NCBI RefSeq assembly: GCF_000142905.1
Contig: NW_013657678.1
Location: 558,001 to 622,000 of the forward strand
Direction: 5' to 3'
Origin: Thecamonas trahens ATCC 50062
Lineage: Eukaryota; Protista; Apusomonadida
DNA: 64,000 bases
Part shown: positions 27,548 through 63,650 of the stretch, piece by piece
Position numbering within the stretch: position 1 is the stretch's first letter
How the letters are laid out: each line of letters opens with the position of its first letter
Made by a program: the position numbers and the translations under genes
Notes under the pieces: generated by a model
Told to the model about the DNA's origin: nothing
Database searches by the model: none
What the model saw: only the letters and a program-made list of their open reading frames with translations

Positions 27548-28357
27548 TTACAGGCGAAACGTCGGCGGCGTCGGGAACTCAAAGTCGCCCGAGAGAACCT
27601 CCTCCGGGGGGAGCGTCTGAAGGTGCGCAATCTGCGCTCGGACGTAGTCGACCATCCGCGCGAGCTCGTTGGCCTCGACGTTGGGCGACATCGAGTACAA
27701 ATTGCGCCACAGCGCCGCCGCCAGCACTGTGTCGTCGCCGATAAAGCCCTCGTCGTAGCCGACAGCTGCGCCGTAGAACATGCCCAGCAGATCCTTGACA
27801 TTGCGCGCCAGAAGCGAGTCCTGAGTGATGCCTGTCGCCCGGATCCGAACCTCGACCTCCTCCCACAGCGAGTCAAAGAGCGCCTGCCGCATCTGCGCGC
27901 CATACGACCCCTCGGTCCGCATCCGTACCATGTACATCCACGTCTGCAGGACCACAAGCCCATACCATGCCCGGAAAGAGTCGTCTGCCGGCAGGCCCAC
28001 CCGCGCCCGAATCTGCACATCGTCGCCCATGGCCGAGAACGCCGCCATCAGCGGCTTGGAAGCCCGGATTGCCGTAGACTCGGTTGAAAACCAGCCGAGC
28101 ATCCGCCCCACACGCCGAGCCATCCGATACTTGAACGGGAGAGATGCCTCGTCCTTCACCTCGCCCACCGTCATCACCACCGGCCCGTCGCCGTCATGCC
28201 CACCTTCGCCGCACTTGCCCTTGCCCTTGCCCTTGCCCTTGCCCTGACTCGAGTGTACCGCCGCTGAAAAGGCAGACCCTGCAGATACCTTACTCATTCC
28301 CGCAACTAGCCTGCTAGCCACAGCACGCCCTGCCAACGTCGGCAATCTGTCCGCCAT
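27548..28357 (-). CDS. UQCC1: Ubiquinol-cytochrome c reductase chaperone (Cbp3/UQCC1)
   Basis: DSFRAWY...WMYMVRMR, FYGAAVGYDEG..DTVLAAALWRN, YVRAQ; presequence-like N-terminus. Confidence 0.88.
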   Translation of the reverse strand: MADRLPTLAGRAVASRLVAGMSKVSAGSAFSAAVHSSQGKGKGKGKGKCGEGGHDGDGPVVMTVGEVKDEASLPFKYRMARRVGRMLGWFSTESTAIRASKPLMAAFSAMGDDVQIRARVGLPADDSFRAWYGLVVLQTWMYMVRMRTEGSYGAQMRQALFDSLWEEVEVRIRATGITQDSLLARNVKDLLGMFYGAAVGYDEGFIGDDTVLAAALWRNLYSMSPNVEANELARMVDYVRAQIAHLQTLPPEEVLSGDFEFPTPPTFRL

Positions 28358-29234
28358 GCCCCTCACCCGCCATGTTGTACTCAGCTGTGAGGATGACGCG
28401 CCCCGGCTCAGCCCCCGCTCCGGCTCTGCCTACCCGGCTCTGCCTACCCGCAAGCCCACACTCCCCCTACCCATCCGCATGCCCATCTCAACTATGTCCT
28501 CCCTTGCGTACATCATTCGTGTGAACATGTCTCACCGATCGCTCCTCGAGTAGCAGATCGAGAGTGAGGTGGCGAACAAGGAGAAGGAGGGCGAGCTGGG
28601 TTGGCTCCGACCTGCTCCGGCCAAAGCCGCCGCCAGTGCTCGACTGTTTTCTCATGTGCTCGAGGGTAGCTGGTGCAGGTGCCAGAGTTGTTGACAAGCC
28701 CGATATCACATCCGTGGTATCTCTAGTTACTCTAGATGGTACACGATCGCCTGCTGCGCATCCGCTTGCCCACTATTGCTCACCCTTCTGATGCTGCTCT
28801 TCCTGCTCTCTGCCGCTGTGATGACCAGAAGCTGCATCGAAACATCCCATTGTCTTGTCTGATGCCCCACTACGTTCTTCATTGTATCAAATCATTCCTA
28901 TCTTTGATCTGCCTTTCCCCATGCCTTCCATCTCAACACATCAGCCAGCCAGCTAGCAGCCCAGCCCGCCCACAGTCACGCCAACGCCCAGCGCCCGCCC
29001 AACGCCAACGCCCACGTCAAGCCACCACTCTCTCCAGAGGACAGGGAGAGGGAGAGAGATGCTTCTCCGCGCGGGAGACAAGCCCGCTTTTAGGCGATAC
29101 CTGATGCGCACGCTTGCGCCCATGTATGTAACCTCTCTCATTCCCCTGCCCCGGGTAAAGTAAACTTTATTTTTTTTATATTGGACAACGGCAACGGACA
29201 TGGGGGGGCCAGACAACTTTCTTCCCTGCGTACT

Positions 29235-29565
29235 NNNNNNNNNNNNNNNNNNNNNNNNNNNNNNNNNNNNNNNNNNNNNNNNNNNNNNNNNNNNNNNNNN
29301 NNNNNNNNNNNNNNNNNNNNNNNNNNNNNNNNNNNNNNNNNNNNNNNNNNNNNNNNNNNNNNNNNNNNNNNNNNNNNNNNNNNNNNNNNNNNNNNNNNNN
29401 NNNNNNNNNNNNNNNNNNNNNNNNNNNNNNNNNNNNNNNNNNNNNNNNNNNNNNNNNNNNNNNNNNNNNNNNNNNNNNNNNNNNNNNNNNNNNNNNNNNN
29501 NNNNNNNNNNNNNNNNNNNNNNNNNNNNNNNNNNNNNNNNNNNNNNNNNNNNNNNNNNNNNNNNN
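29235..29565. other. Assembly gap (N run)
   Basis: Run of N. Confidence 1.
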
Positions 29566-29652
29566 CTCCCCCCCCCCCCCCCTCCGTCCACACACACTCA
29601 CTCAGGCCCACCTTCACACTCCCTACACTCCCTACCATTATGCTGATGACAG

Positions 29653-31883
29653 TACGGTTGCTGACCAAGAAACGCTCTCTGACTTTGTGGTGACGCTGCT
29701 GTCGGACGACAAGCCCGAGGCCGAGCTGCGGCGACTGTGCTTCTCAGAGACGCAGTTTTCCTTCAGTCCAAGACTGCTTGGTTCGTGGATACCATATTCA
29801 AGGCGCTTAAGTCGCGCTCATTTGCCGGTGGTCGTCCGGTTAATCATCCGCCGGCTTCTTCTACACCCTCTGCTCCTGGCCTGGCTGGCGCTGACGATGC
29901 TCAGCCGTCGAGGAAGCGTCCGCTCTCGCCGCCGCGCATCGATGAGATGAGCGGCCACACCGGTGCTACTGGCCACGATGATGATGTAGAGCCGCAGGCG
30001 AAGCGGCGCCATGGCCTCCAGGACCGCCTCGGCCCGCGCAGAGATGCCTCGTCCGCCCGCTCTGCTAGCCAGGAGATGCTGCGCTCGCGCGATCGCGAGC
30101 GGGGCAACCGTGGCGGTGACCGGGGTGACCGTGGCAACGACCGCCGTGGCGATCGTGGCGACCGCCACTCTGACCGCGACCGTGGTGACCGTGACCGCAG
30201 CGACCGCGGTGACCGACGTGGAGGTCGGTTTGACGACCGCGGCAGCGACCGACGTGGAGGTCGGTTTGACGACCGTGGCCCGCCGCCGCCCGGACCGCCG
30301 CCTCCAGGCATGCTTCCACCGCCTCCTACCGCTGCCAGTGGCGGAGCTGGCTTCCTCGACCCAGACGCCCAGCCGCCGGACGACATCCCGTTCGGTCCGG
30401 CCAAGACTAGCAACCGCGGCAGCGACCGTCGCGGTGGCGACCGCAGTGGTGACCGTGGTGGCAACCGTGACGGTGATCGCGGCGGACGCGGCCGTGGCGG
30501 CGATCGTGGCGGCGATCGCGGTGGCGATCGAGGCCGTGGCGGCGATCGTGGTGGCGATCGAGGCCGTGGCCGCGACTCGGACTCGTCACGGTTCTCCAAG
30601 TTGACACTGCGAGTGTACAACATTCCGGACGAGCTGCTGGCTGAGAGCCACCTGCGCGCGCACTTTGGCGTCTTTGGAGCTATTGTCAAGTGCACACCGA
30701 TCCCGCCCAAGTCATCGGCTTTTATCCAGTTCCTCACAGCCAAGTCTGCCAAGCGGGCGTACGAGTCGCCCAAAGCTGTTCTCGGCAACCGGTTCATCAA
30801 GCTCCAGTGGGCGTTTGCCAACGACGAGACTGAGGCCGGCAACATGGAGGCGTACATGGAGGCCGTGGCGTCGGGGGAGGCCGTGCCACAGGCTGCGCCG
30901 GCGTCGGCACCGCGGCGGCCCGAGCGCGCCGAGCGCTACGAGGGCTCGTCGCGATTCGACCGCCGTGAGCGTGATGAGTTCGCCGACGACGACGAGGTCG
31001 CTGCCGGCGACGATGGGCCGATCCGGGGCGCTGAGCCCGCAGCGGGTGCCACTGAGCTCGACGCCGCCGCCGTCAACGCCGCCAAGCTCGAGGCTGTCGC
31101 CAAGCGCAAGGCTGCGGCAGACATGCACAAGAAAAAAGTGGCGCTCCTCCGCGAGCGTCTCGCCAAGTACGAGAAGATCCTCAAGCTCATGCTCGCAAAC
31201 CCCAAGCTGCAAGTGCCCGAGAAGATGGCCGAGATCACTGGCAACGTTAAGGAGTTGCAGGCCGAGCTCAAGGCGCTGTTGGACTCGCCACCAGCCACTG
31301 TCGCGCCGCTGCCGGCTGCCACGAATGGGCGCGGGCGGGGCCGGGGCCGTGGGCGCGGGCGAGGCTAAAATGAACAAGTGGACGGGTAGAGATTGGGCGA
31401 GGCCGGGGGCGTGGGCGAGGCCGGGGCGGCTACCACGCCGGGCCTGCTCGCGACGCTCCGCCGTCCGGCTTTGTCATCCGCGGCCTCGGCGAGAGCGCCG
31501 CCGGAAACATGACCGCCGTCCGCAAGCACTTTGAAACGCTTGCGCCGATTCGGTCGCTCTCGTTTGACAAAAACGATCCACACGTGGCGTACATCCAGTT
31601 CCGCTCGCGCGAGGATGCTGAGTATGTCAAGGAGGCCGGCGCGACGTCGCTTGACGGCGCCACCATCGCGCTTGAGTGGCACTCGGGCCGGGCCGGCGCT
31701 ATTGGCAGTCGCAGCGGCAGCGGCAGCACTGCCTCGCGCGGAGAAGGCAGCAGCACGACGGCTGCCGCTTCTAACGACGGCGAGGAGGACCTCGTCGGCG
31801 AGGAGGAGGACGTCGACGACGACGACGAGTACGTGGTGGACGACGACAACGACCCGGTGGGCGAAAAGTCGTGGAAGCGGTAA
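29653..31883 (+). CDS. RBM26/RBM27-like RNA-binding protein (PWI + RRM + coiled coil + RRM); first exon missing, with breaks near 29757 and 31366-31394
   Basis: PWI-like LSDFVVTLLSDDKPEAELRRLC..FLQSKTAWFVDTIF; RRM LRAHFGVFGAIV..AFIQF..AVLGNRFIKLQW; RGG tracts; second RRM AYIQFRSREDAE. Confidence 0.82.
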
Positions 31884-31992: not shown

Positions 31993-34006
31993 CTACTGCG
32001 GCATGGGCATGCCGCCCGGAGGACCGCCTGCGGGCGGCTGCGGGGCCTGCTGGCCACCGGCCTGCTGCGGGGCGAGGCCCGAGACGATCTCGTCGATGCG
32101 GAGCAGGAGGGTGGCCTGCTCGACGGCGGTCTTGATGGTCTGGACCTTGACTGCGTACGGCTCCCAGATGTCGATGGTGGTCATGTCGATGAGCTCGCCG
32201 GTGATGCCGTTGACGCCCATGGTGGCGTTGTCGCCCGAGGCGTGGGCAGCGCGGAGCTCCGTCATGAGGCGAATGACGTTGGCGCCGCAGTTCTGGGCCA
32301 ATGTGCGCGGGATGACCTCGAGGGCCTCGGCGGCGGCGCGGTAGGGCCACTGCTCGATGCCCTCGATAGACTTGGACTTGCGGACGAGGGCCTGCGAGAG
32401 CGCCATCTCAATGGAGCCACCGCCGGGGACGACGCGCGGGTCAAAGACAACGTTGCGGGCAACGTTCATGGCGTCCTGGAGGTTGCGGTCGATCTCCTGG
32501 AGCACGTCCTTGGACGCGCCGCGGAGAAGGATGGTGGCCGCCTTGGGCGCCTCGCACTCGACAAAGAAAGAAAAGTAGTCGTCGCCGATCTTGCGGATGT
32601 CAAACAGGCCGCACCCGGTTCCGACGTCGCTCTCCTTGACCTCCTCAGGGCGGTGGCAGATGGTGGCGCCGACGGCACGGGCAATGCGGTTGTTGTCGGT
32701 CTTGCGAAGCCGGCGGATGACAGTCACGTTGGCCTTCATCAGGTAGTGCTGCGCCAGGTCAGAGCAGCCCTTCTCGGTGATGACAATGTCGGGCTTGAGC
32801 GCGAGGAGGTCGGCGCAGAGGCGCTGGACGTGGGCGTCCTCGAGCTCGAGGATGCGGTTAAAGTCGGCTTCGCCCGAGATCTCGATGTCGGTCTTGGACT
32901 CGCCCTTGATGTACTCGAGCGGGCAGTCGAGGAGGATGATGCGCGGGTTCTCGATGCGGCGGCGCATCTTCTGGTGCACAATGTCCTTGTTGATCATGAC
33001 GCCCGAGAGGACGCGCGAGTCCTCCATGGTCCCGCCGGGGATCTTCTCCACGCGCGCGTACCGCTTGATGTCGATCTCCGTCCGGCCGTCCTGCTCCAGG
33101 TGGACCGTGTTGACGGCGTCGAGCGCCAGGTTGCACATCAGCTCCATCCACCGCGACGAGAACTTGGTGCCCAGGCACGACTTGATGAGGTTCATCATCG
33201 ACGGCCGGTCGTTCGGGTCGATCGGGAACGAGAGCTCCTCCATGTAGTCGACCGCGTCGTCGAGCATGCGGCGGAAGGCCGAGCAGATGACAATCGGGTG
33301 CATGTTGCGCTCGAGGAAAAGCTCCGCAGACGCCATGACCTCACCGGCGAGAATCGCCACAGACGTCGTTCCGTCGCCGACCTCCTCGTCCTGCGTCCGC
33401 GACAGCTCGATCATCGACTTGGCCGCCGGATGCTTGACGTCGATCTCACGAAGGATCGCGTTGCCGTCATTGGTCATCACAATGCCGCCCATCGGATCCA
33501 GGATCATCTTGAGCATGGCACGCGGGCCAAGGCACGTCCGGACCACGTCGGACACGGCCTAAAGTAACGAGAGGGAGTGCCCAATGCGGTGAGTTGGGCA
33601 GAGTGTGGGCGAGTGAGGGCGGGGGAAGGGTGGGGGTTTTGGGGGGAGCGTCAGAACGGGGGATGGCGACCTGGGCAGCAAGTGGCACTCTTGCACCACC
33701 GCCAGAGGGCGGAATAAAAGTGGTACAAGCCGCACAAGTAGTAGAGATGGTAGCACATATTGCCAAGATCATGGACATGTGGTGGGAATGGATGGTGGTG
33801 GAAGATTCCCTGCTGTAGGTCGGAATATGTATGGATAGTGTCATGTCTGGCGCCAAAGTAGAAAAATGCTCAGAGCGGGCGAGGGGGGGGGCGGGGGCGG
33901 GGGGCAGGCGAAGGGGGATGGGGATACAGAGCAAGCAGACGTACCTTTGCAGCGGCAATGTTCGAGAGCTGAGCCTTGCGACCCTTCTCACTCTCCTGGT
34001 TGGTGT
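31993..34006 (-). CDS. CCT3: T-complex protein 1 subunit gamma; exons 34006-33945 and 33558-31993, first exon probably near 34115-34149
   Basis: GRKAQLSNIAAAK|AVSDVVRTCLGPRAMLKM across a GTAC...TAG intron; TNDGNAIL, GDGTTSV, IDIKRYARVEKIPGG. Confidence 0.96.
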
Positions 34007-34646
34007 CTGTTCTCGCTCAGCAGTCTGTGAGTTCTATCCAAAGCTATGCGTGTTGGGCGCGACCCATGGGGTCGGCCAGGGCTTGGCTGGGAGGAGGGGA
34101 GGAAGGGGAGGGACCTGGTTATTCAACGATTACTCCTTGGCGCAATCATTGAATGAATGGGATCATTCGCGCCGTCGAAAATCGCGCAATTCTACCTCGT
34201 CCTCACCCATACCAACCAAGGCCAATAGGGAGAGAGGGATATACAGGAGAGGAGGGGGAGAGAAGGGGGTAGTGTAAGGTGTGGGTGTGGGTGTGGGTGT
34301 GTGGGGGGGTACGTACTGAACACCATAACGTTGGGTTGGCGGCGGGGCATCATCTTGTTGGAGTGGTGCCGTCGAGTGTGCAGACTCCCGCCGTCTGCCG
34401 ACTGCCGATTGCTGGCCGACGCAAACAGCGGTCGCCGTCGGTAAGGAGGGTGGGCGGACGGGGGTGGGCGGAGGGGGGGGGAAGGGGGAGGGGGAGGGGA
34501 AGGGGATGGAGATCATGGGCGATGATGGGATGATGGATTGGAAGGGGGTGGGGGAGGGGGACCAGAGTGGAAAAGAGTTTGGAGATGATCAGCCAGGGGT
34601 TGCGGGGTGGAAGGGATGGAAGGGAGGGGTGTGGGGTGTGGGGGGA

Positions 34647-34973
34647 NNNNNNNNNNNNNNNNNNNNNNNNNNNNNNNNNNNNNNNNNNNNNNNNNNNNNN
34701 NNNNNNNNNNNNNNNNNNNNNNNNNNNNNNNNNNNNNNNNNNNNNNNNNNNNNNNNNNNNNNNNNNNNNNNNNNNNNNNNNNNNNNNNNNNNNNNNNNNN
34801 NNNNNNNNNNNNNNNNNNNNNNNNNNNNNNNNNNNNNNNNNNNNNNNNNNNNNNNNNNNNNNNNNNNNNNNNNNNNNNNNNNNNNNNNNNNNNNNNNNNN
34901 NNNNNNNNNNNNNNNNNNNNNNNNNNNNNNNNNNNNNNNNNNNNNNNNNNNNNNNNNNNNNNNNNNNNNNNNN
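34647..34973. other. Assembly gap (N run)
   Basis: Run of N. Confidence 1.
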
Positions 34974-35102
34974 ACACACACACACACACCACCACCACCA
35001 CCACCCACCCACCCACCCACCCCACCCACCCCCCCCCCCCACCCCCCCCCCACCCCCCCACCCACACACACATACACCATACACACGCATACACTGTGAG
35101 GT

Positions 35103-36326
35103 ATGTCTCAACTAACCCCAGCTCGCTCTCAGCCGGCGTACCTCCCGGCTTGGCTGGCACCTGGCTCAAAGGGCGCCAACAGGACACGCGACAGCGCGGC
35201 AGGCTCTCATCGACGGGGCGGGACTGGGTATGGGCACGATGACGGTGATATTCGCTCTCGGTTTGAAAAGGTCGAACAGAAGAGTCGGTTGGCTGCTCAG
35301 ACGGCAAGCTATGGGCAGAGTCAGGCAAGACTCTCCTCTGCGCCAGCATCATCAGCCAGCGCTGCGCCAACAAGCCACGGCGGAGGCTCGTCGCCGTCAC
35401 AGCGGATCTTTGCAGAGTCCCTCTCGCGGATGAGAGGCGAGGCTGTCCCAGCCTATGCACCGCCTAAGCTCGAACCGCTCCCACCGCGCACAGATCGCCC
35501 GCACATGCCGCCGAGGCAGCCGCTGGCATCAGCAGGGCTCGTGGCGAGCGCACGATTGACACGGAGGCCCGCGGCAGAGGCGAGCGAGCGGGTGCTGGCA
35601 AGCAGACGGGCGATGAGTCGCACAGCTGCGGCTGTCGATCCACTCGACGCCAGGCGGAGCAGACGTGGAGGCCCAGCACCAGGGCCACCAGCGGCGCCGG
35701 CGCTAGCAACACACATGGCGCTGCAGCCGCCGGTCGGCGCCTCGCTCAACACGGCAGCGTCGTCAACAGCGGTCCTTGCGGCACAGATTAGATCCGAGGG
35801 CATTCGGCTCTCGCCTGATGTGCGGAGCCAGGTGGCACGGACCCGTGCTGCAGTCTCAGCCGCCAACTCGCGCATTGCCGAGCTCGAGGCCCGCTCGCTG
35901 TGGGACACTCCGCCGCGGTCGCAGCCGCTCGGCTCGGTCCCGCACATCCTGGCTGTTGATGGGAGTGCACCGACGTTTGCCCAGCTGAAGCACGCTATTG
36001 CGGCCATGTCGCTCTCCCCCTCGCCTCCGCGTAGCCGGCCAGCAGCGGCGTCGGCGGCGCTGACCTCACTCGAGGCGCTCACACTCTCAGCCAACATGGC
36101 GGCCAGCTCAGCGGCATCCGCTGCCATCCGCTCGTCGCGGGTGCCGGCGGCACGGCCGCGGCCGCGGATTTCGCGGCGTCCGCCATCTGCTCCGTCGACC
36201 GCCCCGCTCCGCCCGTTCACCTCCGCCCGCCGAGCCGAGTTCTCGGCCGACGCCGCGCTGGCGTCGTCGCGGGCCGCAGTCGCCGCGTCGTCGCTCCGGG
36301 CCCCGCTCTCGCTCGCGGATCTTTAA
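35103..36326 (+). CDS. Hypothetical low-complexity Ala/Ser/Arg/Pro-rich protein
   Basis: 407-aa ORF filling the space between the gap and a convergent gene; no family recognised. Confidence 0.5.
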   Translation: MSQLTPARSQPAYLPAWLAPGSKGANRTRDSAAGSHRRGGTGYGHDDGDIRSRFEKVEQKSRLAAQTASYGQSQARLSSAPASSASAAPTSHGGGSSPSQRIFAESLSRMRGEAVPAYAPPKLEPLPPRTDRPHMPPRQPLASAGLVASARLTRRPAAEASERVLASRRAMSRTAAAVDPLDARRSRRGGPAPGPPAAPALATHMALQPPVGASLNTAASSTAVLAAQIRSEGIRLSPDVRSQVARTRAAVSAANSRIAELEARSLWDTPPRSQPLGSVPHILAVDGSAPTFAQLKHAIAAMSLSPSPPRSRPAAASAALTSLEALTLSANMAASSAASAAIRSSRVPAARPRPRISRRPPSAPSTAPLRPFTSARRAEFSADAALASSRAAVAASSLRAPLSLADL

Positions 36327-56053: not shown

Positions 56054-59000
56054 CTACAGGATGAGCTGCTGGATGGGAGTGACGACGATGTCGGATGCAC
56101 CGCCCATCTTCAGCTGTGGGATGAGGGTGGTGAGCGCCTTTTGCTGGACGGCGGTGCGGACGGCAAAGGCGTGGCCGCCGTAGAGCTGCGCCACGGTCGG
56201 GTTCTTGAGCGCGGGGAGCGAGGGGATGAGATCCTCGAGCAGGCTCTCGTCGACGTTGAACTCGATCATGACGCGCGAGCGGCCATCGAGGGCCGACTTG
56301 AGGAGGAGGACGAAGCGATCGATCTCGGCCTTGCGGACCGGGTCGGCAAGCGCGGCCTTGGACGCCACCAGATACGTCTCCGAGGTCATAATGACGTCGA
56401 TGATGGAGAGCCGGTTAGCCTTGAGTGTCTCTCCGGTGGCAGTGTTGTCGATGATGACATCGGCGTCGTCGGGCACGTAGACCTCGGTCGCACCGCCGGT
56501 CTTGATGTACGACGCGTCGAGACCGGTGTCCGCGATCCACTTCTTGGTGAGCGTCACGTACTCGGTGGCGATGACAAGCTTGCGATCGGTGGGGAGCGAG
56601 CCGCCGTGGGCAGCGAGGAGGGCATCCGGCGCGGCGACGACAACCCGGACCGGGTCCATGCCGGTGGCAAAGTATGGCACCACCTCGCCGCCGGCCTCAA
56701 GCTCGGCGATGAGGTCGACGCCGGCAAAGCCCATGTCGCGCTTGCCGGCCTGGATGAGCCGGACCGTGTCGCGCGGCTTGAGCAGCTTGACGTCCCATCC
56801 GTCGAGGTTGATCGACGGCCGCAGCGACCGGGCCCGGATCTTAACCTTGATTCCACCGTCTGCGAGGAGTGAGAGGATGTTCTCGTTCATCCGGCCCTTG
56901 GGCAGCGCAAACTTGATGACAGCGCCGCTCTCGTTGGCGGCCGGGAGGGCGACGCCTGCAGTGCCGACGGCGCTGGCCGATCCGGCCCGCGAGCGCGAGA
57001 TAGATCCGCTCTTCTCGGTGCCGACCAGCGCGAGGCGTGCTTTGGCCGCAGCCGCGTGGCCGAGCAGACCCTCCATCGACGCGAGCGCCACCGCATCGGC
57101 CACGATGTCGCCCGCGGCACCCATGTCCGTCATGTGGACAAAGGTCCGGACCCGGAGGAAGGTGAGGACCGAGAGGCCGCCAAAGGCCTTGGCGCTCCCA
57201 CCGGTTGGCAGCGTGTGGTTGACGCCGACCGAGTAGTCGCCGAGCACCTCGGCCGAGCCGGCGCCCACAAATAGCGATCCGTAGTTGTCCAGCTCCTCAG
57301 TCAGCCGTGCCAGATCATGTTTGCCCCCGTCAACCTGGATCTCCAGGTGCTCGGGCGCAAGCGCGTTGGCCACCGCCACCGCCTCATCCATGTTGGCGGC
57401 AATGACCGAGAACCCGTTGTTGGCGAGCGCGGTCGTCGCGGTCGCTGCGTTGGGCCCAAGCTCACCAGAGGCGATCTGGGAAGCGAGCGCAGCATTGACC
57501 GCATCGACCACGCACGCATCGGGCGTGACGAGGATCGGCACGGCGGCGACGTCGTGCTCAGCCTGGGCGAGGAGGTCGGCGGCGATGAGCCCCGGATCGG
57601 CGGATGCGTCGGCGAGGACCAGACACTCAGACGGGCCGGCGAGCATGTCGATGGCAACCGAGCCGGCCACGAGTGACTTGGCGGCGGTGACCCACTTGGA
57701 TCCTGGACCGACAATGGCGTCGCAGGCCGGCACGGCGCCCGCGCCGTAGGCCATGGCGCCGATAGCCTGGGCGCCGCCGATCGTCAGCAGCTTGTCGACC
57801 TTGGCGACGTGGCAGGCGGCCAGAATGATGGGCGCAGGATGCGGCGACGCGACAATGACGTCGGCGCAGCCGGCGACCCGCGCCGTCACAGCCGTCATGA
57901 GCACCGTCGACGGCAGCGGGTAGCGGCCACCGGGCGCGTAGCAACCTGCGCGCGTGACCGGCGAGATCGAGTGGCCGATGTCGCCGCCGGCGATGGAGAG
58001 AGTGAGCGGGTGAAGCGACTGCTTCTGCGCGAGCGCAAAGGTCTCGATCCGCCCGGCGCATCGGCGGAGCACCTTACGTTCGGCCTCGGGAATACTCTCA
58101 TAGGCTGCGGCAAACTCGGCTGGCCCGAGCACGTACCGTTGCTCATCCCGCCAGTACTCGTCTGCATCAGAGAGGTCGCCAAACTTGGTCGCGAGCTCGA
58201 GGAGCGCCGACTCGCCATCGGCTTCGATGCGCGCAAGGATGGACCGTGCGACCTTGAGCGCTTCGGCATCAACAGCATCGACGTACGCCGAGGTCTTGCC
58301 GGACAAGACGTCCGCGGCGGCGACTTGCCGGAGCGCTGGCGTGGGAGAGCCTGTGGGTGCTGGTGCCGGGATGGACGGCCCCGAGCCGCCATCGACGGCG
58401 GCGGGCTCGAGAGGGGCAGCCTTGGGCTTGACAGCGCCTCCGCGGCGCTTGACGTAGAGTGATCGGGATGCAAGGTGGCGCTCGACGTCGACGAGCGGGA
58501 TGCCAGCCTTAACGAGGCCGACCATGACAAAGTAGAGCACGTCGGCGGCTTCCCAAGTGGCGGCGGCGGGATCAAACGGTTGGGCGGCGAGGGCCTCGAT
58601 GTACTCGCCGGCCTCCTCCTCGATCTTTGCGGCGAGCATGGATGGCTTGTCAAAGAGCTTCTTGGTGTACGAACCCTGCGGGGCGCTCTCCAGCCGGGAC
58701 ACGAGGGTGCGGTAGAGATCGCCGAGCGCATCGAGCGAGCCGCCGGGACTGGGCACGCCGGCAAAGCACGCGCGGCGCGAGGGGACATGGCAAAAGCCAT
58801 TGCCATCCTGCGAGACGACAAAGGTGAGAGCATCGGCGTCGCAGTCGAGGGCAATGGCGTGGAGCGTTTGGGTTGCGCCCGACGACGCGCCCTTGCGCCA
58901 CAGCCCGCGGCTCCGCGACCAGTAAACGCCAGCGCGCTCATCGACAGCGGTGCGGATCGAGGCCTTTGACGAGTAGACTTGGCCGAGGAGCTGGCCGCGA

Positions 59001-61216
59001 CAGTCAACGACGACGGTGGGGAAGAGGCCGTCGGCGCGATCCGAGACGAGCGGGGCGGCGATGGCGTCTCCAAGTGAGAGCTCACCCGAGTAGAGCGACA
59101 TGCCGACCTGGCCCATGGCGCCGAGGGCGTAGAGGTCGGCAAGGTCAGCAGGCGAGGTGATGCCGCCGGCAATGGTGAGCGAGAGCGGGAGGCCGAGGGA
59201 AGTCGAGGCGGCAGCAATGACGGCGACAAGGTCGGCAATGGCGGAGCGGTCGATGCCAACCATGCGGCCCTCGCGCTCGACAAAGGTGACGAGGAAGCCG
59301 GAGCAGTACGGCGCGAGGGCGGTGACCCGGTCTGCAACCGACTCGCCGGTCTTGGTCGTCCACCCGTCCACCACTACCTCGCCGTGAACGGCGTCGAGGG
59401 CGACGAGGACGCGATCGCGCGGGAGCTGGGCGAGGAGTTCGGGGCTAGCGGCGGTGCCGATGATGACCGAGCGGGCGCCGGCCTGGAGGTAGTCGAGGGC
59501 GGCGTCGACGGAGCGAATGCCACCACCGACTCGGCATGGGTAGCGCTTGCAGAGCTCGACGATGGCGTCCTTGTTGGAGCCACGCGAGAGGGCGGCGTCG
59601 AGGTCGATGACCGCGATCTCGCCGGCGAGGGCAAACTTGGCTGCAAGGGCGTCGAGCTCGCTGCCGGCGTCGATCTTGAGCTTCTCGGGATCACCGCCGA
59701 CAAGCTGGACAGCACGGCCGCCCATGAGGTCGATGGAGGGAACGACGGCCTGCGGCGGCGGTGAGAGGTGGAGCTTGGTCGCGGCGTCGGGTGCAAACGA
59801 CGGCGGGCGGACCGAGAGCGACGGATCCAGGAGCGAGAGGGCCGATTTGATCGAGCCGACGGTGTAGTCGCCGTAGTGGAAGATGGATGCCGCGAGGAGG
59901 GCATCGGCGCCGGCGGCGATGGCGGCGACCATGTGCTCCGGCGACGAGGCGCCGCCCGAGGCAACAACCGGGATTGAGACGGCGGCGGAGACGGCGGCGA
60001 GGAGCTTGGTGTCGTAGCCGGAGCGGGTGCCGTCGCGGTCAAACGAGGTGAGGAGAATCTCGCCGGCGCCGGCGGCGGCGGCGCGGGCGGCCCACTCGAT
60101 GGCATCGATGCCAGTCCGCTCCGAGCCGGACTTGACGACAACCTCCCAGCCGGAGGCCGTCGAGTCAGCCGAGCGTGCGTCGACGGCAATGACGATGCAC
60201 TGCGAGCCAAAGCGGGAGGCGAGGCGGGAGATGAGCGCCGGGTCACGGACGGCGGCGGTGTTGACGGCGATCTTGTCGGCGCCGGCCTCGAGTAGGGCCT
60301 GGGCCGAGTCGACGGAGCGGACGCCGCCGCCGACGGTCATGGGGAGGAGGACAGAAGCACGGAGGGACCGGATCATGTCGAGGGCGGTGGCACGGGCTTC
60401 GGGCGTGGCGGAGATGTCGAGAATGACCAGCTCGTCGGCGCCCTGGGCCTCGTAGGCGCGGGCAAGCTCGACGGGATCGCCGGCGTCGCGCAGGCCTTCA
60501 AACTGGACGCCCTTGACTACGCGGCCGTCCTTGCAGTCGAGGCAGGGGATGATGCGGCGGGTGTGCGGCGGGGCGATGGGATCCGGGACCGGAAGCGGGG
60601 CGCGCGCGAGGTCGACAAATGCCTTGAGGATGGCGAGACCGAACGAGCCCGAGAGTTCAGGGTGGAACTGGGTGGCGAGGACGTTGCCGCGCTGGAGGGC
60701 AGCGACGTAGTCGGAGCCGTAAGAGGCGATGGCAGCGGACCAGCCGAGCGGAACGGATCGGAGGCAGAACGAGTTGGAGAAAAAGGCGTAGCCCGGTCGA
60801 GAAATAATGTCGCCTGCAGCAGACGCCATAGGCTTGACCTTTGCCCATCCCTGCTGTGGAATGGGCCGCGAGGCGACGTTGTCAAACTTGACGACGTTGG
60901 CGCTAGCCAAGACACCGAGGCCATTGACGCCGGGAGACTCGTCAGAGCAAGCAGCGAGAATTTGGAGACCGACGCAAACAAACAAAGTAGGAAGGTTGCT
61001 AGCGAGACGGGCCTTGATGGCATCGATGAGGCCAGGGGACGAGGCAAGAGCGTCCATAGAGGCACCAAAAGTGCCCACGCCGGGAATAACAACCAGCGGA
61101 GCGCTGGCTACGTCAGCCGACTCGATCGAGGTCCTTGGCTTGGCGCCAGCCCGCTTGAGTGAGGCTGCCACAGAGGCCACGTTAGCCACTCCCGTACATA
61201 CAATCACAGTGTCCAT
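56054..61216 (-). CDS. hisH-hisF-hisA-hisI-hisE-hisD-hisG: Seven-domain histidine biosynthesis fusion: HisH (~61216-60600), HisF (~60565-59835), HisA (~59750-59050), HisI (~59045-58765), HisE (~58735-58440), HisD (~58335-57030), HisG long form (~56920-56054)
   Basis: HisH: PGVG, CVGLQ, QFHPE. HisF: RIIPCLD, GADELVILDI, LTSFDRDGT, ASIFH. HisA: PSIDLMGGRAVQL, VGGGIR. HisI: YWSRSR.LW.KG.SSG, DCDADAL, CH..CF. HisE: SYT, KIEEEAGE, EAADVLY. HisD: YAPGG, AGPSE, QAEHD, APEHLE, GDY..G.NHTLPT. HisG: ALPKGR, ATEY, GATE, DNTATGETLKAN, plus C-terminal regulatory domain. Confidence 0.96.
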   Translation of the reverse strand: MDTVIVCTGVANVASVAASLKRAGAKPRTSIESADVASAPLVVIPGVGTFGASMDALASSPGLIDAIKARLASNLPTLFVCVGLQILAACSDESPGVNGLGVLASANVVKFDNVASRPIPQQGWAKVKPMASAAGDIISRPGYAFFSNSFCLRSVPLGWSAAIASYGSDYVAALQRGNVLATQFHPELSGSFGLAILKAFVDLARAPLPVPDPIAPPHTRRIIPCLDCKDGRVVKGVQFEGLRDAGDPVELARAYEAQGADELVILDISATPEARATALDMIRSLRASVLLPMTVGGGVRSVDSAQALLEAGADKIAVNTAAVRDPALISRLASRFGSQCIVIAVDARSADSTASGWEVVVKSGSERTGIDAIEWAARAAAAGAGEILLTSFDRDGTRSGYDTKLLAAVSAAVSIPVVASGGASSPEHMVAAIAAGADALLAASIFHYGDYTVGSIKSALSLLDPSLSVRPPSFAPDAATKLHLSPPPQAVVPSIDLMGGRAVQLVGGDPEKLKIDAGSELDALAAKFALAGEIAVIDLDAALSRGSNKDAIVELCKRYPCRVGGGIRSVDAALDYLQAGARSVIIGTAASPELLAQLPRDRVLVALDAVHGEVVVDGWTTKTGESVADRVTALAPYCSGFLVTFVEREGRMVGIDRSAIADLVAVIAAASTSLGLPLSLTIAGGITSPADLADLYALGAMGQVGMSLYSGELSLGDAIAAPLVSDRADGLFPTVVVDCRGQLLGQVYSSKASIRTAVDERAGVYWSRSRGLWRKGASSGATQTLHAIALDCDADALTFVVSQDGNGFCHVPSRRACFAGVPSPGGSLDALGDLYRTLVSRLESAPQGSYTKKLFDKPSMLAAKIEEEAGEYIEALAAQPFDPAAATWEAADVLYFVMVGLVKAGIPLVDVERHLASRSLYVKRRGGAVKPKAAPLEPAAVDGGSGPSIPAPAPTGSPTPALRQVAAADVLSGKTSAYVDAVDAEALKVARSILARIEADGESALLELATKFGDLSDADEYWRDEQRYVLGPAEFAAAYESIPEAERKVLRRCAGRIETFALAQKQSLHPLTLSIAGGDIGHSISPVTRAGCYAPGGRYPLPSTVLMTAVTARVAGCADVIVASPHPAPIILAACHVAKVDKLLTIGGAQAIGAMAYGAGAVPACDAIVGPGSKWVTAAKSLVAGSVAIDMLAGPSECLVLADASADPGLIAADLLAQAEHDVAAVPILVTPDACVVDAVNAALASQIASGELGPNAATATTALANNGFSVIAANMDEAVAVANALAPEHLEIQVDGGKHDLARLTEELDNYGSLFVGAGSAEVLGDYSVGVNHTLPTGGSAKAFGGLSVLTFLRVRTFVHMTDMGAAGDIVADAVALASMEGLLGHAAAAKARLALVGTEKSGSISRSRAGSASAVGTAGVALPAANESGAVIKFALPKGRMNENILSLLADGGIKVKIRARSLRPSINLDGWDVKLLKPRDTVRLIQAGKRDMGFAGVDLIAELEAGGEVVPYFATGMDPVRVVVAAPDALLAAHGGSLPTDRKLVIATEYVTLTKKWIADTGLDASYIKTGGATEVYVPDDADVIIDNTATGETLKANRLSIIDVIMTSETYLVASKAALADPVRKAEIDRFVLLLKSALDGRSRVMIEFNVDESLLEDLIPSLPALKNPTVAQLYGGHAFAVRTAVQQKALTTLIPQLKMGGASDIVVTPIQQLIL

Positions 61217-61775
61217 GTTGTTGCGCGAGCGAGACGTTGCTGAAAAAGAAGTTGCAGTCCGCTAGGTTAGCGGAGACGAGGAGTGTGGCGACGTGCGGAG
61301 GGATCGTGGCGACGCGTGCGGATGGCATTTTTTTAACCATCCGCAACTTTCCATTCGAATGTTCTAGCTCTGCTACCCCTACTCACACCTCCTGCAAGCG
61401 GGAGAGAGCTTGCAAAGGAAGGAAAAGTGAATGCTGAGGTGCAAGGAGCAAGGATAATGCCAAATGTTGGAGTGTGGTACGTGTAAAGGCGGCAGTCAAC
61501 GGAGGGGATGAGTATGATGTTCAAGATCACGAGCAAGAAAGTTAGCTTAGAATTGGCGGTGGAGCCGCTGTCACAGCGCAGGCCACTCACTCACATACCT
61601 GTCTGCAGACCAGTTGTATGTGGGCGGGGTGAAGTGGGGCAAAAAGAGGGGGGAGGGGGACACCGTGGGCAGATACTCATAGTGGTATGTTGGTGGGACT
61701 GGGATGCTGCGGGTGGGCGCACTGGCTGGCTGGCTGGCTGACTGGCTGGCTGGCTGGCTGGCGTGCTGGTAATCG
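61217..61775. promoter_or_regulatory. Putative bidirectional promoter between the two his genes
   Basis: 559-bp, lower-GC spacer between two divergent ATGs. Contains an imperfect direct repeat GTGGCGAC(GC)GTGCGGA and a (GCTG)n tract. Function inferred from position only. Confidence 0.55.
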
Positions 61776-63650
61776 ATGGCTCAGATGGCGAGGTTCATTC
61801 GTGACGACCTCGCGAGCGCCCGCTACAAGGGCGTAGAGTCGATCGAGGCGCTGGCTGACGAGCTCGGCATTGCGGTCTCGTCGATCATCAAGCTCAATGC
61901 CAATGAGAACCAGTACGGGGTGCCCGAGGCGTGTGCGGCAGCGATGAGCGCCGCCATCAACGTCACCACCCATGTGTATCCGGATCCAAGCCAGGCCAAG
62001 CTCCGGGGTGCCGTGGCAGAGCTGCATGAGCTCGGGCCCGAGTCTGTTGTTGCCGGTGCTGGCTCGGACGACATTCTCGACATTATTCTGCGCGCGACTG
62101 CGCCCAAGATTGTGGCCTACGCGCCGCCGACCTTTGGCATGTACTCCTTCCTCGCCAAGGTCAACGGTTCGATCGAGCAGGTGCTCATTGAGAGAACGCC
62201 CGAGTTTGGCGTCACGGCCGCGTCCGTTATCGCGAGTGTGAGCGAGGCGCTCGCTGACGGCGGCCACGGCGTCGTCTTTCTACCATCGCCCAACAACCCG
62301 ACCGGCAACCTGGTGGCACTCGGCGAGGTGCGTGCCATGTGTGCCGCGCTCCCGAACGCCATCATTGTTCTCGACGAGGCGTACATCGACTTTGCACCGG
62401 CCGGCGCCTCTGCCGCGGGCCTCATCGGTGAGTATGACAACCTTGTTGTCTGCCGCACCTTTTCCAAGTGGGCCGGCCTCGCCGGGACACGGATCGGGTA
62501 CTGCCTCGCCGATCCTCAGCTTGTTGCCACCTTTCTCGCCATCAAGCAGCCGTACAACGTCAACTGTGCGGCAGAGGCAGGCGCGCTGGCGGCGCTCGGC
62601 GCGCGCGACGACATCCTGGCGTCGTCGGTCTCGCGGCTCATTGTCGAGCGGCGCAACGTGTTTGTCCAGCTCGCAGCGCTAGCGCCACTGGTAGTCCCGG
62701 TCCCGTCGTCGGCCAACTTTGTCCTCGCGCGCATTGCAGACACCGCGCCGCTGACTGCAGGCGAGCTTGCGTCTGCGCTCCGCGCCGCCGGCATCCTCAT
62801 CCGCTACTTTAACAAGCAGGGCGGCGACCTCGAGGCTTACATCCGGATCTCGGCCGGTAAGCCGGCAGACACTGCGGTAGTGATAGGAAAGATCCGTGAG
62901 CTGCTGGGAGCCGCACCCGCGCCACCGCCGGTTCTCGCCAACCCAGGCATCGAGGCGGTGCTCTTCGACATGGACGGTGTGCTCGCCGACGTCGGCGCCT
63001 CGTACCGGGCGGCCATTGTCGCCACGGCGAAAGCGTTTGGTGTCACCGTCACCGCCACCGACATCGATGCGGCCAAGGCGGCCGGCAACGCCAACAACGA
63101 CTGGCTGGTAACCCGAGCGCTCATCGCCGCCAGCGACGACGCGCCGCAGCCGCTGCCGACGCTCGACGAAGTGACTTGTCAGTTTGAGGCGCTCTACCAC
63201 GGCGATGGCAGCACCCGCGGCCTCTACGCCAACGAGACACTCGTGGTCGCAGCCGACTTGCTCCACTCGCTCAAACATGTTGCCGGGCTCAAGCTCGCCG
63301 TCGTTACCGGCCGCCCGCGCGATCCGGACGCCACCCGCTTCCTTGACGACTTTGGCCTCACCGGGCTCTTTGACGCCGTCATCACCATGGACGACGGCCC
63401 GGCCAAGCCATCGCCGGTCCCGATTCAACTCGCGCTTGACGCACTCGGCGTAGCACCAAGCGCCGCCATCATGCTCGGCGACACGGTCGACGACGTCGCC
63501 GCCGCCCTCGCCGCCTCGGTCCCCGCGCTCGGCGTCATCCCACCCGGCGCTGGCGAGCCGGATGGCCTTGCCAAAGTCCTCACGCTCGCCGGCGCAAGCT
63601 ACGTCATGGGCCCGGGCTGCTTCGAGCTTGCGCACCTGATCACCCGCTAG
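61776..63650 (+). CDS. hisC: Histidinol-phosphate aminotransferase fused to a HAD-IA hydrolase (putative histidinol-phosphate phosphatase)
   Basis: HisC: KLNANEN, YPD, GAGSDD, PNNPTG, DEAY, RTFSKWAGLAGTRIGY. HAD from ~62945: LFDMDGVLAD, VVTGRP, KPSP, MLGDTVDD. Confidence 0.93.
   Translation: MAQMARFIRDDLASARYKGVESIEALADELGIAVSSIIKLNANENQYGVPEACAAAMSAAINVTTHVYPDPSQAKLRGAVAELHELGPESVVAGAGSDDILDIILRATAPKIVAYAPPTFGMYSFLAKVNGSIEQVLIERTPEFGVTAASVIASVSEALADGGHGVVFLPSPNNPTGNLVALGEVRAMCAALPNAIIVLDEAYIDFAPAGASAAGLIGEYDNLVVCRTFSKWAGLAGTRIGYCLADPQLVATFLAIKQPYNVNCAAEAGALAALGARDDILASSVSRLIVERRNVFVQLAALAPLVVPVPSSANFVLARIADTAPLTAGELASALRAAGILIRYFNKQGGDLEAYIRISAGKPADTAVVIGKIRELLGAAPAPPPVLANPGIEAVLFDMDGVLADVGASYRAAIVATAKAFGVTVTATDIDAAKAAGNANNDWLVTRALIAASDDAPQPLPTLDEVTCQFEALYHGDGSTRGLYANETLVVAADLLHSLKHVAGLKLAVVTGRPRDPDATRFLDDFGLTGLFDAVITMDDGPAKPSPVPIQLALDALGVAPSAAIMLGDTVDDVAAALAASVPALGVIPPGAGEPDGLAKVLTLAGASYVMGPGCFELAHLITR

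Follow-up and report, generated by a model that had tools for sequence, protein, structure and literature searches.

The apusomonad flagellate Thecamonas trahens carries an intron-free gene whose product joins seven domains of histidine biosynthesis in one polypeptide, and this gene is very probably, in identity and in function, the T. trahens orthologue of the gene for the heptafunctional histidine-biosynthesis protein of Acanthamoeba (Rice et al., 2018, PLoS One 13:e0198827, PMC6029752). It lies on the minus strand at positions 56054-61216 of a 64,000-nucleotide stretch of the T. trahens ATCC 50062 genome (contig NW_013657678.1, positions 558,001 to 622,000), referred to throughout as the window. 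The seven-domain architecture is not new, having been published for Acanthamoeba in 2018, and by itself it matters little. The value of following up this locus lies in the colinearity of the fusion with one type of bacterial his operon and in a candidate phosphatase of the HAD family, which is encoded by the neighbouring gene as a fusion to a HisC-type aminotransferase. According to the best-supported reading of the data, the eukaryotic family shares specific ancestry with this one operon type, the order of which has been preserved. If true, this would provide a testable case of a whole bacterial biosynthetic operon becoming eukaryotic genes by cistron fusion, with intermediate stages present in living bacteria, and would also offer a candidate new class of histidinol-phosphate phosphatase (HolPase).

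Seven domains in one reading frame

The open reading frame (ORF) extends over 1720 aa from an ATG start with 0 internal stops, as seen in both the ORF listing and the translation, and a further in-frame start codon upstream of this ATG was not found. The public gene model P0001 (GCA_000142905.1, scaffold GL349434.1 of 680,870 bp; the assembly is assigned to T. trahens in PMC5362262) is the same protein, with 100% identity and coverage, and its computed mass is 176.6 kDa. A first-pass annotation of the window, made from the nucleotide sequence, had proposed a single uninterrupted frame of this length with a product of ~175 kDa, and both proposals hold, as does its assignment of seven domains in this order with their catalytic motifs, which is borne out by Pfam, NCBIfam, and alignments to known structures. 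The surroundings of the gene are of eukaryotic type: the window has ~63% G+C and holds long intron-free ORFs for typical eukaryotic proteins, among them a GDI/REP-like protein, a NIF-type phosphatase, a Nuf2-like coiled coil, an eEF1A-family GTPase, and an NAD kinase. The gene and its domains are listed below in N- to C-terminal order, in which the pathway steps follow one another as 5, 5, 4, 3, 2, 9/10, 1.

56054..61216, minus strand: whole ORF including the stop codon, order HisH-HisF-HisA-HisI-HisE-HisD-HisG (ORF listing, Pfam, NCBIfam)
60602..61216, minus strand: HisH glutaminase, aa 1-205, half of step 5 (TIGR01855, 135 bits against a cut-off of 105)
59822..60571, minus strand: HisF cyclase barrel, aa 216-465, step 5 (TIGR00735, 339 bits against a cut-off of 294)
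59051..59761, minus strand: HisA ProFAR isomerase barrel, aa 486-722, step 4 (second His_biosynth match; NF010113 and NF003156 at 490-718)
58751..59044, minus strand: HisI phosphoribosyl-AMP (PR-AMP) cyclohydrolase, aa 725-822, step 3 (PF01502)
58451..58738, minus strand: HisE phosphoribosyl-ATP (PR-ATP) pyrophosphatase, aa 827-922, step 2 (PF01503; TIGR03188, 62.8 bits against a cut-off of 42.7)
57017..58336, minus strand: HisD histidinol dehydrogenase, aa 961-1400, steps 9 and 10 (TIGR00069, 376 bits against a cut-off of 244)
56057..56932, minus strand: HisG ATP-phosphoribosyltransferase, long form, aa 1429-1720, step 1 (PF01634 and PF08029; TIGR00070 and TIGR03455 above their cut-offs)

Pfam, the E-values of which apply to the whole protein rather than to single domains, places GATase at 35-200 (7.7e-8), His_biosynth twice (HisF at 221-451 and a second match at ~490-720; 2.1e-112), PRA-CH at 747-818 (4.7e-21), PRA-PH at 832-918 (1.5e-17), Histidinol_dh at 984-1395 (5.2e-119), HisG at 1480-1639 (9.1e-30), and HisG_C at 1646-1716 (7.7e-18). 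The curated NCBIfam cut-offs are exceeded for hisD, hisF, hisH, hisG, the HisG C-terminal domain, and the hisE domain. One score speaks against the assignment, namely the modest 32.7 bits of GATase in Pfam, though TIGR01855 exceeds its cut-off for this domain. The HisG domain is of the long form (HisG-L), with catalytic domains followed by a C-terminal histidine-binding regulatory domain (PF08029, TIGR03455), a form that does not depend on HisZ.

Catalytic residues are retained in all seven domains, for HisF and HisA as judged on invariant Asp only; invariance here refers to an alignment of homologues (A1, n=6). When HisH is aligned to 1ka9_H of Thermus thermophilus and to yeast HIS7 (1jvn_A), Cys81 (VCVGLQ) and His185/Glu187 (QFHPELS) match the catalytic triad, and all three residues are invariant. 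HisF, with matches to HisF structures in the PDB down to 1e-85, has invariant D227 and D346 together with the channel-gate residues R221, E262, K315, and E386, which we take to be, in this order, D11, D130, R5, E46, K99, and E167 of Thermotoga maritima. D496 and D608 of HisA are likewise invariant, and the invariant Asp residues of both barrels presumably correspond to the T. maritima catalytic residues. Alignment of HisI-HisE to plant HISN2 (7bgm) and bacterial HisIE (6j2l) shows that the DCDxD metal motif and the Cys/His/Cys ligands are kept (D791, C792, D793, D795, C809, H810, and C817 of HisI are invariant, as are E867, E868, E871, E889, and D892 of HisE). The motifs QAEHD, PEHLE, and GDY..NH.LPT of HisD are kept in the alignment to 4gic, and HisG aligns to the last residues of the long-form structures 2vd3, 1nh7, and 1h3d (Methanothermobacter thermautotrophicus, Mycobacterium tuberculosis, and Escherichia coli) with the phosphoribosyl pyrophosphate (PRPP) loop DNTATGETL intact. 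The earlier proposal of a eukaryotic single-polypeptide multi-enzyme for steps 1-5 and the two terminal oxidations is thus supported, the domains being ordered and their motifs intact.

The interdomain linkers are 7-57 aa in length, with Pro, Ala, Ser, and Gly abundant. The first-pass description of "short Pro/Ala linkers" was right as to this general character but not for the two longest, those between HisE and HisD (~57 aa) and between HisD and HisG (~38 aa). The frame is unbroken over all 6/6 domain junctions and the linkers can be aligned between species. A chance architecture is excluded because homologues are colinear along the whole length of the protein, with full-length matches at 48-70% identity. 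The protein begins at the HisH fold without an N-terminal extension; therefore, no transit or targeting peptide is apparent and, judging from its sequence, the protein is apparently cytosolic.

We infer that each domain would work like its free-standing homologue. By analogy with HIS7, ammonia would pass from HisH to the HisF barrel, and histidine feedback would be expected to act on the C-terminal domain of HisG, as in other long-form enzymes. The fusion would fix the activities at 1:1 and put all of them under one promoter; channelling between domains and an oligomer built on the HisD and HisG interfaces are possible by the same kind of analogy. Being free of introns, the ORF lends itself readily to cloning for expression, complementation tests, and structural studies of this 177-kDa pathway enzyme. 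The histidine pathway is a target for herbicides and, in Acanthamoeba, for anti-amoebic agents.

Eukaryotic relatives and colinear bacterial operons

The protein of Acanthamoeba castellanii and A. polyphaga was described as a "unique heptafunctional polypeptide" of 1,682 aa and 179 kDa with the same seven activities (PMC6029752). The A. castellanii sequence (XP_004333513.1, P0165) aligns colinearly with the window protein in a single BLASTP match at 52% identity (901/1746), and identity per domain is 50-65%. It was recovered by a profile search; a full-length word-index search gave 7 matches, with Acanthamoeba not among them. The supplementary HisD comparison of the same paper already includes T. 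trahens at 51% identity (PMC6029752), and we measured 51.7% for this domain. The two proteins agree in their seven domains, in domain order, in the long form of HisG, and in having the step-6 enzyme, imidazoleglycerol-phosphate dehydratase (IGPD), outside the protein. They differ in their hosts, T. trahens belonging to Apusomonadida and Acanthamoeba to Amoebozoa, and in gene structure: the T. trahens gene is intron-free, whereas in Acanthamoeba the 1,682 codons are spread over 7.9 kb (L086 8001-15909, KB008148.1), which makes that gene intron-rich. In addition, the HisC-HAD gene stands head to head with the T. trahens gene, whereas no his gene adjoins the Acanthamoeba gene.

The first-pass annotation knew of no characterised seven-domain version and on this point was wrong, as the same H-F-A-I-E-D-G protein had been described in Acanthamoeba (PMC6029752). 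Its suggestion of novelty, which it had itself made dependent on the architecture being neither widespread nor described, likewise fails: about nine distinct seven-domain lineages were found as clusters in public data, including Stygamoeba regulata transcripts and several metagenome and Logan contigs. Among these, metagenome contig L001 carries the same seven-domain gene, 70% identical to the window protein (60-81% per domain). Single transcripts of Stygamoeba, Paramoeba, and Mylnosiga encode six- or seven-domain versions. With the T. trahens copy, the fusion can no longer be called "unique" to Acanthamoeba: it is present in both Amoebozoa and Apusomonadida, and choanoflagellates have six-domain versions. 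Shorter or altered variants include H-F-A-I-E-D in Paramoeba atlantica and the choanoflagellate Mylnosiga fluctuans, H-F-A-I-E-IGPD in several eukaryotic lineages, A-I-E-D-HisC-HAD in Protostelium nocturnum, A-I-E-G in Clastostelium recurvatum, H-F-G in Mastigamoeba balamuthi, and D-G and C-D-G in further lineages. The H-F-A-I-E-IGPD proteins are nested among the seven-domain proteins (87/79), so this variant looks secondary.

Two further eukaryotic loci were observed in passing. A protein of 868 aa from the choanoflagellate Hartaetosiga balthica (P0021) has a HIS4-like I-E-D arrangement preceded by ~217 N-terminal residues without a domain match, and its HisD is sister to that of the six-domain Mylnosiga protein; these N-terminal residues might be a decayed HisA. 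On contig JAWVHD010000739.1 of GCA_040384145.1 (L087 1-12828), a HisC-HAD-IGPD gene, purH, and a His megafusion lie on one strand within ~12 kb, with HisG annotated as a gene of its own (232 aa) that follows HisD by 50 bp. The purH product is the AICAR transformylase/IMP cyclohydrolase, where AICAR is 5-aminoimidazole-4-carboxamide ribonucleotide and IMP is inosine monophosphate. This arrangement resembles a functional cluster, because AICAR is a by-product of the HisF reaction and purH stands alongside.

Bacterial relatives were collected by scanning bacteria and archaea, one genome per species, with three aligned HAD domains as the query. The closest HAD relatives (45-56% identity) are found in Planctomycetota, Gemmatimonadota, and Myxococcota. 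Loci L005-L022 have on one strand the order hisG, hisC-HAD, hisB, hisH, hisF, hisA-hisI-hisE, hisD, and several of the operon contigs are megabase-sized bacterial chromosomes. The order of H, F, A, I, E, and D in this operon is the domain order of the fusion, and its C-HAD(-B) segment corresponds to the eukaryotic HisC-HAD(-IGPD) proteins. Among the bacterial sequences found, those nearest to G, H, F, A, I, E, D, and HAD also come from these operons. Identities to the window domains are 56-65% for F, 48-63% for A, 52-69% for I, 37-46% for E, 43-57% for D, 42-48% for G, and 37-47% for H, in addition to the 45-56% for HAD given above, so that per domain the operon proteins are nearly as close to the window protein as is Acanthamoeba. 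The corresponding values for E. coli are 41% for F, 36% for D, 27% for G, and 29% for I.

Unlike the fusion, most operon genes are separate overlapping cistrons. Frame-and-stop analysis of the bacterial gene junctions, however, found C and HAD in one ORF in every locus of the operon type with both domains, and A, I, and E in one ORF in every locus with all three. The fusion goes further in a Polyangia metagenome-assembled genome (MAG), with A, I, E, and D in a single ORF (L008 6566-8602), and in two Gemmatimonadota MAGs with H and F in a single ORF (L014 2095-3441; L016 1224-2558). Two F-A-I-E proteins (P0174, P0175) group with these bacteria. In the operons hisB codes for a monofunctional protein, 198 aa long in L005. 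Acidobacteriota have a more distant operon type, in which all genes are unfused and follow one another as I-G-D-C-HAD-B-H-F-A; a Woesearchaeota locus, sampled in part, reads I-G-D-C-HAD, and a Microgenomates locus has D, a fused C-HAD, B, H, A, F, and I. In an unbiased search of 1.8 billion representatives, the top HisD-only match lay on a bacterial contig with, in addition, an A-I-E fusion gene. For the A-I-E protein P0054 no genomic context was on record, and P0137 sits on a contig of 1.4 kb that adds no information. No mention of this operon type, of its colinearity with the fusion, or of the TIGR01548 HAD as a HolPase was found in the literature searched, which included reviews of histidine gene organisation and had most subscription journals outside its coverage.

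The trees, all rooted on E. coli, agree with these identities. In the concatenated tree of H, F, A, I, and G (30 rows, 1042 columns, LG+C20+F+G4 with posterior mean site frequencies (PMSF), full search), the eukaryotes including the window protein and Acanthamoeba are monophyletic (ultrafast bootstrap, UFBoot, 98; SH-aLRT 99), and together with the operon bacteria they form a clade on a long stem (100/100) with the Acidobacteriota-type operons outside. All eukaryote-type HisG sequences form one clade (SH-aLRT 98) among the operon bacteria, with Aminicenantes and then Acidobacteriota outside. In the HisF tree a eukaryotic group (91) lies inside a 41-row clade with the operon bacteria (93), whereas H-A-F fusions of the candidate phyla radiation (CPR) type and others fall outside. 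The HisD tree has a 54-row clade (98) of all eukaryotic fusions and most operon bacteria, and fungal HIS4 is the outermost group of the tree.

The familiar fungal proteins HIS4 (HisI-HisE-HisD) and HIS7 (HisH-HisF) correspond to contiguous sub-blocks of the window protein, but they are products of separate genes without HisA or HisG. The window protein is not of HIS4 type, as H, F, A, and G are also present and its HisD lies outside the fungal clade. The HisD trees place the HisD of fungal HIS4 (e.g., Mycena pura P0033) farthest out, in a separate clade with support of 100 that is remote from the window HisD. In the short I-E tree, fungal HIS4 falls near the megafusions with weak support. The idea that HIS4 and HIS7 could be fission products of the megafusion is opposed by the HisD trees and weakly favoured by the I-E tree. 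The pentafunctional AROM protein of the shikimate pathway and CAD are likewise large eukaryotic polypeptides with several enzymes of one pathway; their domains are unrelated and serve other pathways, and the likeness, drawn in the first-pass annotation, is one of organisation only.

Origin of the fusion

How could an operon of this kind give rise to the eukaryotic proteins? A bacterial his operon with the order G, C-HAD, B, H, F, A-I-E, D would have been transferred to a eukaryote, and adjacent cistrons, some of them already fused in bacteria, would have merged into single reading frames after the transfer. From the trees and gene orders together we infer, with the balance tipping slightly in its favour, that operon capture followed by fusion was the origin of the eukaryotic megafusions. 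Transfer from bacteria to eukaryotes is the most parsimonious direction because the outgroups are bacteria in which the unusual C-HAD-B-H-F-A order is already present. The head-to-head pair of his genes in Thecamonas may be a leftover of operon linkage.

Several observations count against this origin. Inside the clade of eukaryotes and operon bacteria the branching is a polytomy, so that eukaryotes as sister to the bacteria and eukaryotes nested among them are not separable, and the trees were built without fungal and plant HisF, HisG, and HisA. The bacterial loci were sampled through the HAD domain, and this sampling is biased. HisG opens the operon but closes the fusion. The pair of his genes was seen only in the lineage of the window and not in Acanthamoeba or in L003 and L004, although the latter two carry HisC-HAD-type genes. 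Finally, the HisC domain of the neighbouring gene is only 28-37% identical to operon HisC, compared with 45-47% to HisC of Dehalococcoidia/Chloroflexi, its best bacterial matches. Therefore, at least the HisC part has a separate history, which fits the Chloroflexi origin published for plant HisC (PMC3518814). These identities do not support HisC as a part of the captured operon, and the HisC-HAD fusion, judging from sequence comparison, may be a mosaic.

The main competitor to operon capture, which we hold to be unlikely, is a stepwise fusion inside eukaryotes from scattered, vertically inherited his genes, with the likeness to the operon due to convergence or to transfer from a eukaryote to bacteria. 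The polytomy leaves room for such a history, and fungal HIS7 (H-F), HIS6 (A), HIS4 (I-E-D), and HIS1 (G) are indeed contiguous pieces of H-F-A-I-E-D-G; the fungal HIS4 HisD is, however, far from that of the megafusions, while the HIS4 I-E part groups with them with weak support. Permuted eukaryotic fusions (A-I-E-D-C-HAD, A-I-E-G, D-G, H-F-A-I-E-B) point to domain shuffling within eukaryotes. Against this, bacterial groups (Aminicenantes in the HisG tree, Acidobacteriota, and Microgenomates) lie outside the clade of eukaryotes and operon bacteria and share the C-HAD-B-H-F-A order, which therefore seems to be the ancestral bacterial state. The reverse route, from eukaryotes into bacteria, would require two transfers as well as fission into overlapping cistrons over three phyla.

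It is far less probable that the gene is a decaying relic with some inactive domains in a bacterivore that could take its histidine from prey. Histidine synthesis has been lost in many phagotrophic protists, yet the 5.2-kb frame is intact with every catalytic motif checked kept, the L001 lineage shows the per-domain conservation given above, the partner HisC-HAD gene is intact, and Acanthamoeba, likewise phagotrophic, grows without histidine (PMC6029752). That separate his genes were joined by misassembly or lost stops has a negligible probability, for although the source is a 2010 draft assembly, the same order with the same divergent neighbour is found in the independent contig L001, the Acanthamoeba gene was checked by polymerase chain reaction (PCR) of five overlapping sections (PMC6029752), transcriptome-derived Stygamoeba proteins and other metagenome and Logan assemblies have the same order, and the frame is continuous over the six junctions with linkers that align across species.

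The divergent HisC-HAD gene and a candidate for step 8

The gene next to the fusion points to a candidate step-8 enzyme, and its features are as follows.

61776..63650, plus strand: HisC-HAD fusion, 624-aa ORF (621 aa in the public model; Pfam Aminotran_1_2 and HAD_2)
61776-62909, plus strand: HisC-type part, probable histidinol-phosphate aminotransferase, aa 1-378, step 7 (TIGR01141, just under its cut-off)
62940-63647, plus strand: HAD-IA phosphatase part, aa 389-624, candidate for step 8 (TIGR01548)
61217..61775, no strand: intergenic region of 559 bp between the divergent his genes, presumed shared promoter region

The aminotransferase part scores 268.9 bits with TIGR01141 (hisC), which is slightly below the cut-off of 276.55 and far ahead of every other family, and the pyridoxal-phosphate lysine (FSKWAG) is present. 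The phosphatase part reaches 166 bits with the HAD-IA family TIGR01548 (cut-off 140.2) and has all of the HAD motifs, DMDGV, VVTGR, KPSP, and GDTVDD, whereas it remains below the cut-off of the HisB-N type TIGR01656 (54 vs. 84 bits). HisC-HAD fusions are widespread, occurring in Stygamoeba, choanoflagellates, and cryptophytes, and in labyrinthulomycetes IGPD is added at the C-terminus, which brings steps 7, 8, and 6 into one protein. By its context the HAD domain is a strong candidate for step 8, being fused to HisC in many eukaryotes and to HisC and IGPD in labyrinthulomycetes. Its relatives also lie between hisC and a monofunctional hisB in >20 bacterial his operons, the examined parts of which hold no further HolPase candidate.

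Published HolPases fall into the HisB-N HAD type, PHP and IMPase-like enzymes, and archaeal HAD enzymes such as nmHisN (PMC9798254; PMC10804674). The nmHisN gene (Nmar_1556) lies between hisC and hisB and its activity has been proven experimentally (Kinateder et al., 2024, PMC10804674). Like E. coli HisB-N and nmHisN, the neighbour domain is a HAD phosphatase with all four motifs, and its bacterial relatives share with nmHisN the place between hisC and hisB, a comparison of gene position and not of sequence. It differs from both in belonging to TIGR01548, a HAD-IA family of no characterised function. The neighbour most likely supplies steps 7 and 8, in which case the two genes together would cover 9/10 activities, with only IGP dehydratase (step 6) elsewhere. 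A tblastn search with the IGPD domain did not find this enzyme in the window, and it must therefore be encoded elsewhere.

The full proposal has two parts: the megafusions and the HisC-HAD(-IGPD) proteins would be the remains of one operon captured by an early eukaryote and made expressible through cistron merging, and the TIGR01548 HAD would be an unrecognised HolPase class filling step 8 in these eukaryotes and bacteria. Taken jointly, we consider this to be as probable as its opposite. The head-to-head pairing of HisC-HAD with the megafusion is also found in L001. The 559-bp intergenic region gave no meaningful alignment or conservation with its L001 equivalent, and TGASTCA (Gcn4-type) sites are absent from this region, with none closer to the locus than 38 kb (4 in the window vs. 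6.8 expected). A GGCT/GGCTGGCT-type microsatellite at 61727-61765 lies within this divergent promoter region, directly upstream of the HisC-HAD start codon.

Elsewhere in the window, tRNA and Rfam scans found nothing beyond two tRNA-Leu(CAG) genes, both distant from the his locus, at 509-589 and 689-769 on the plus strand; they have equal scores, lie 100 bp apart, and are apparently a tandem duplicate. The G+C content falls to 0.50 at 28001-30000 and to 0.54 at 34001-36000, compared with 0.60-0.68 elsewhere.

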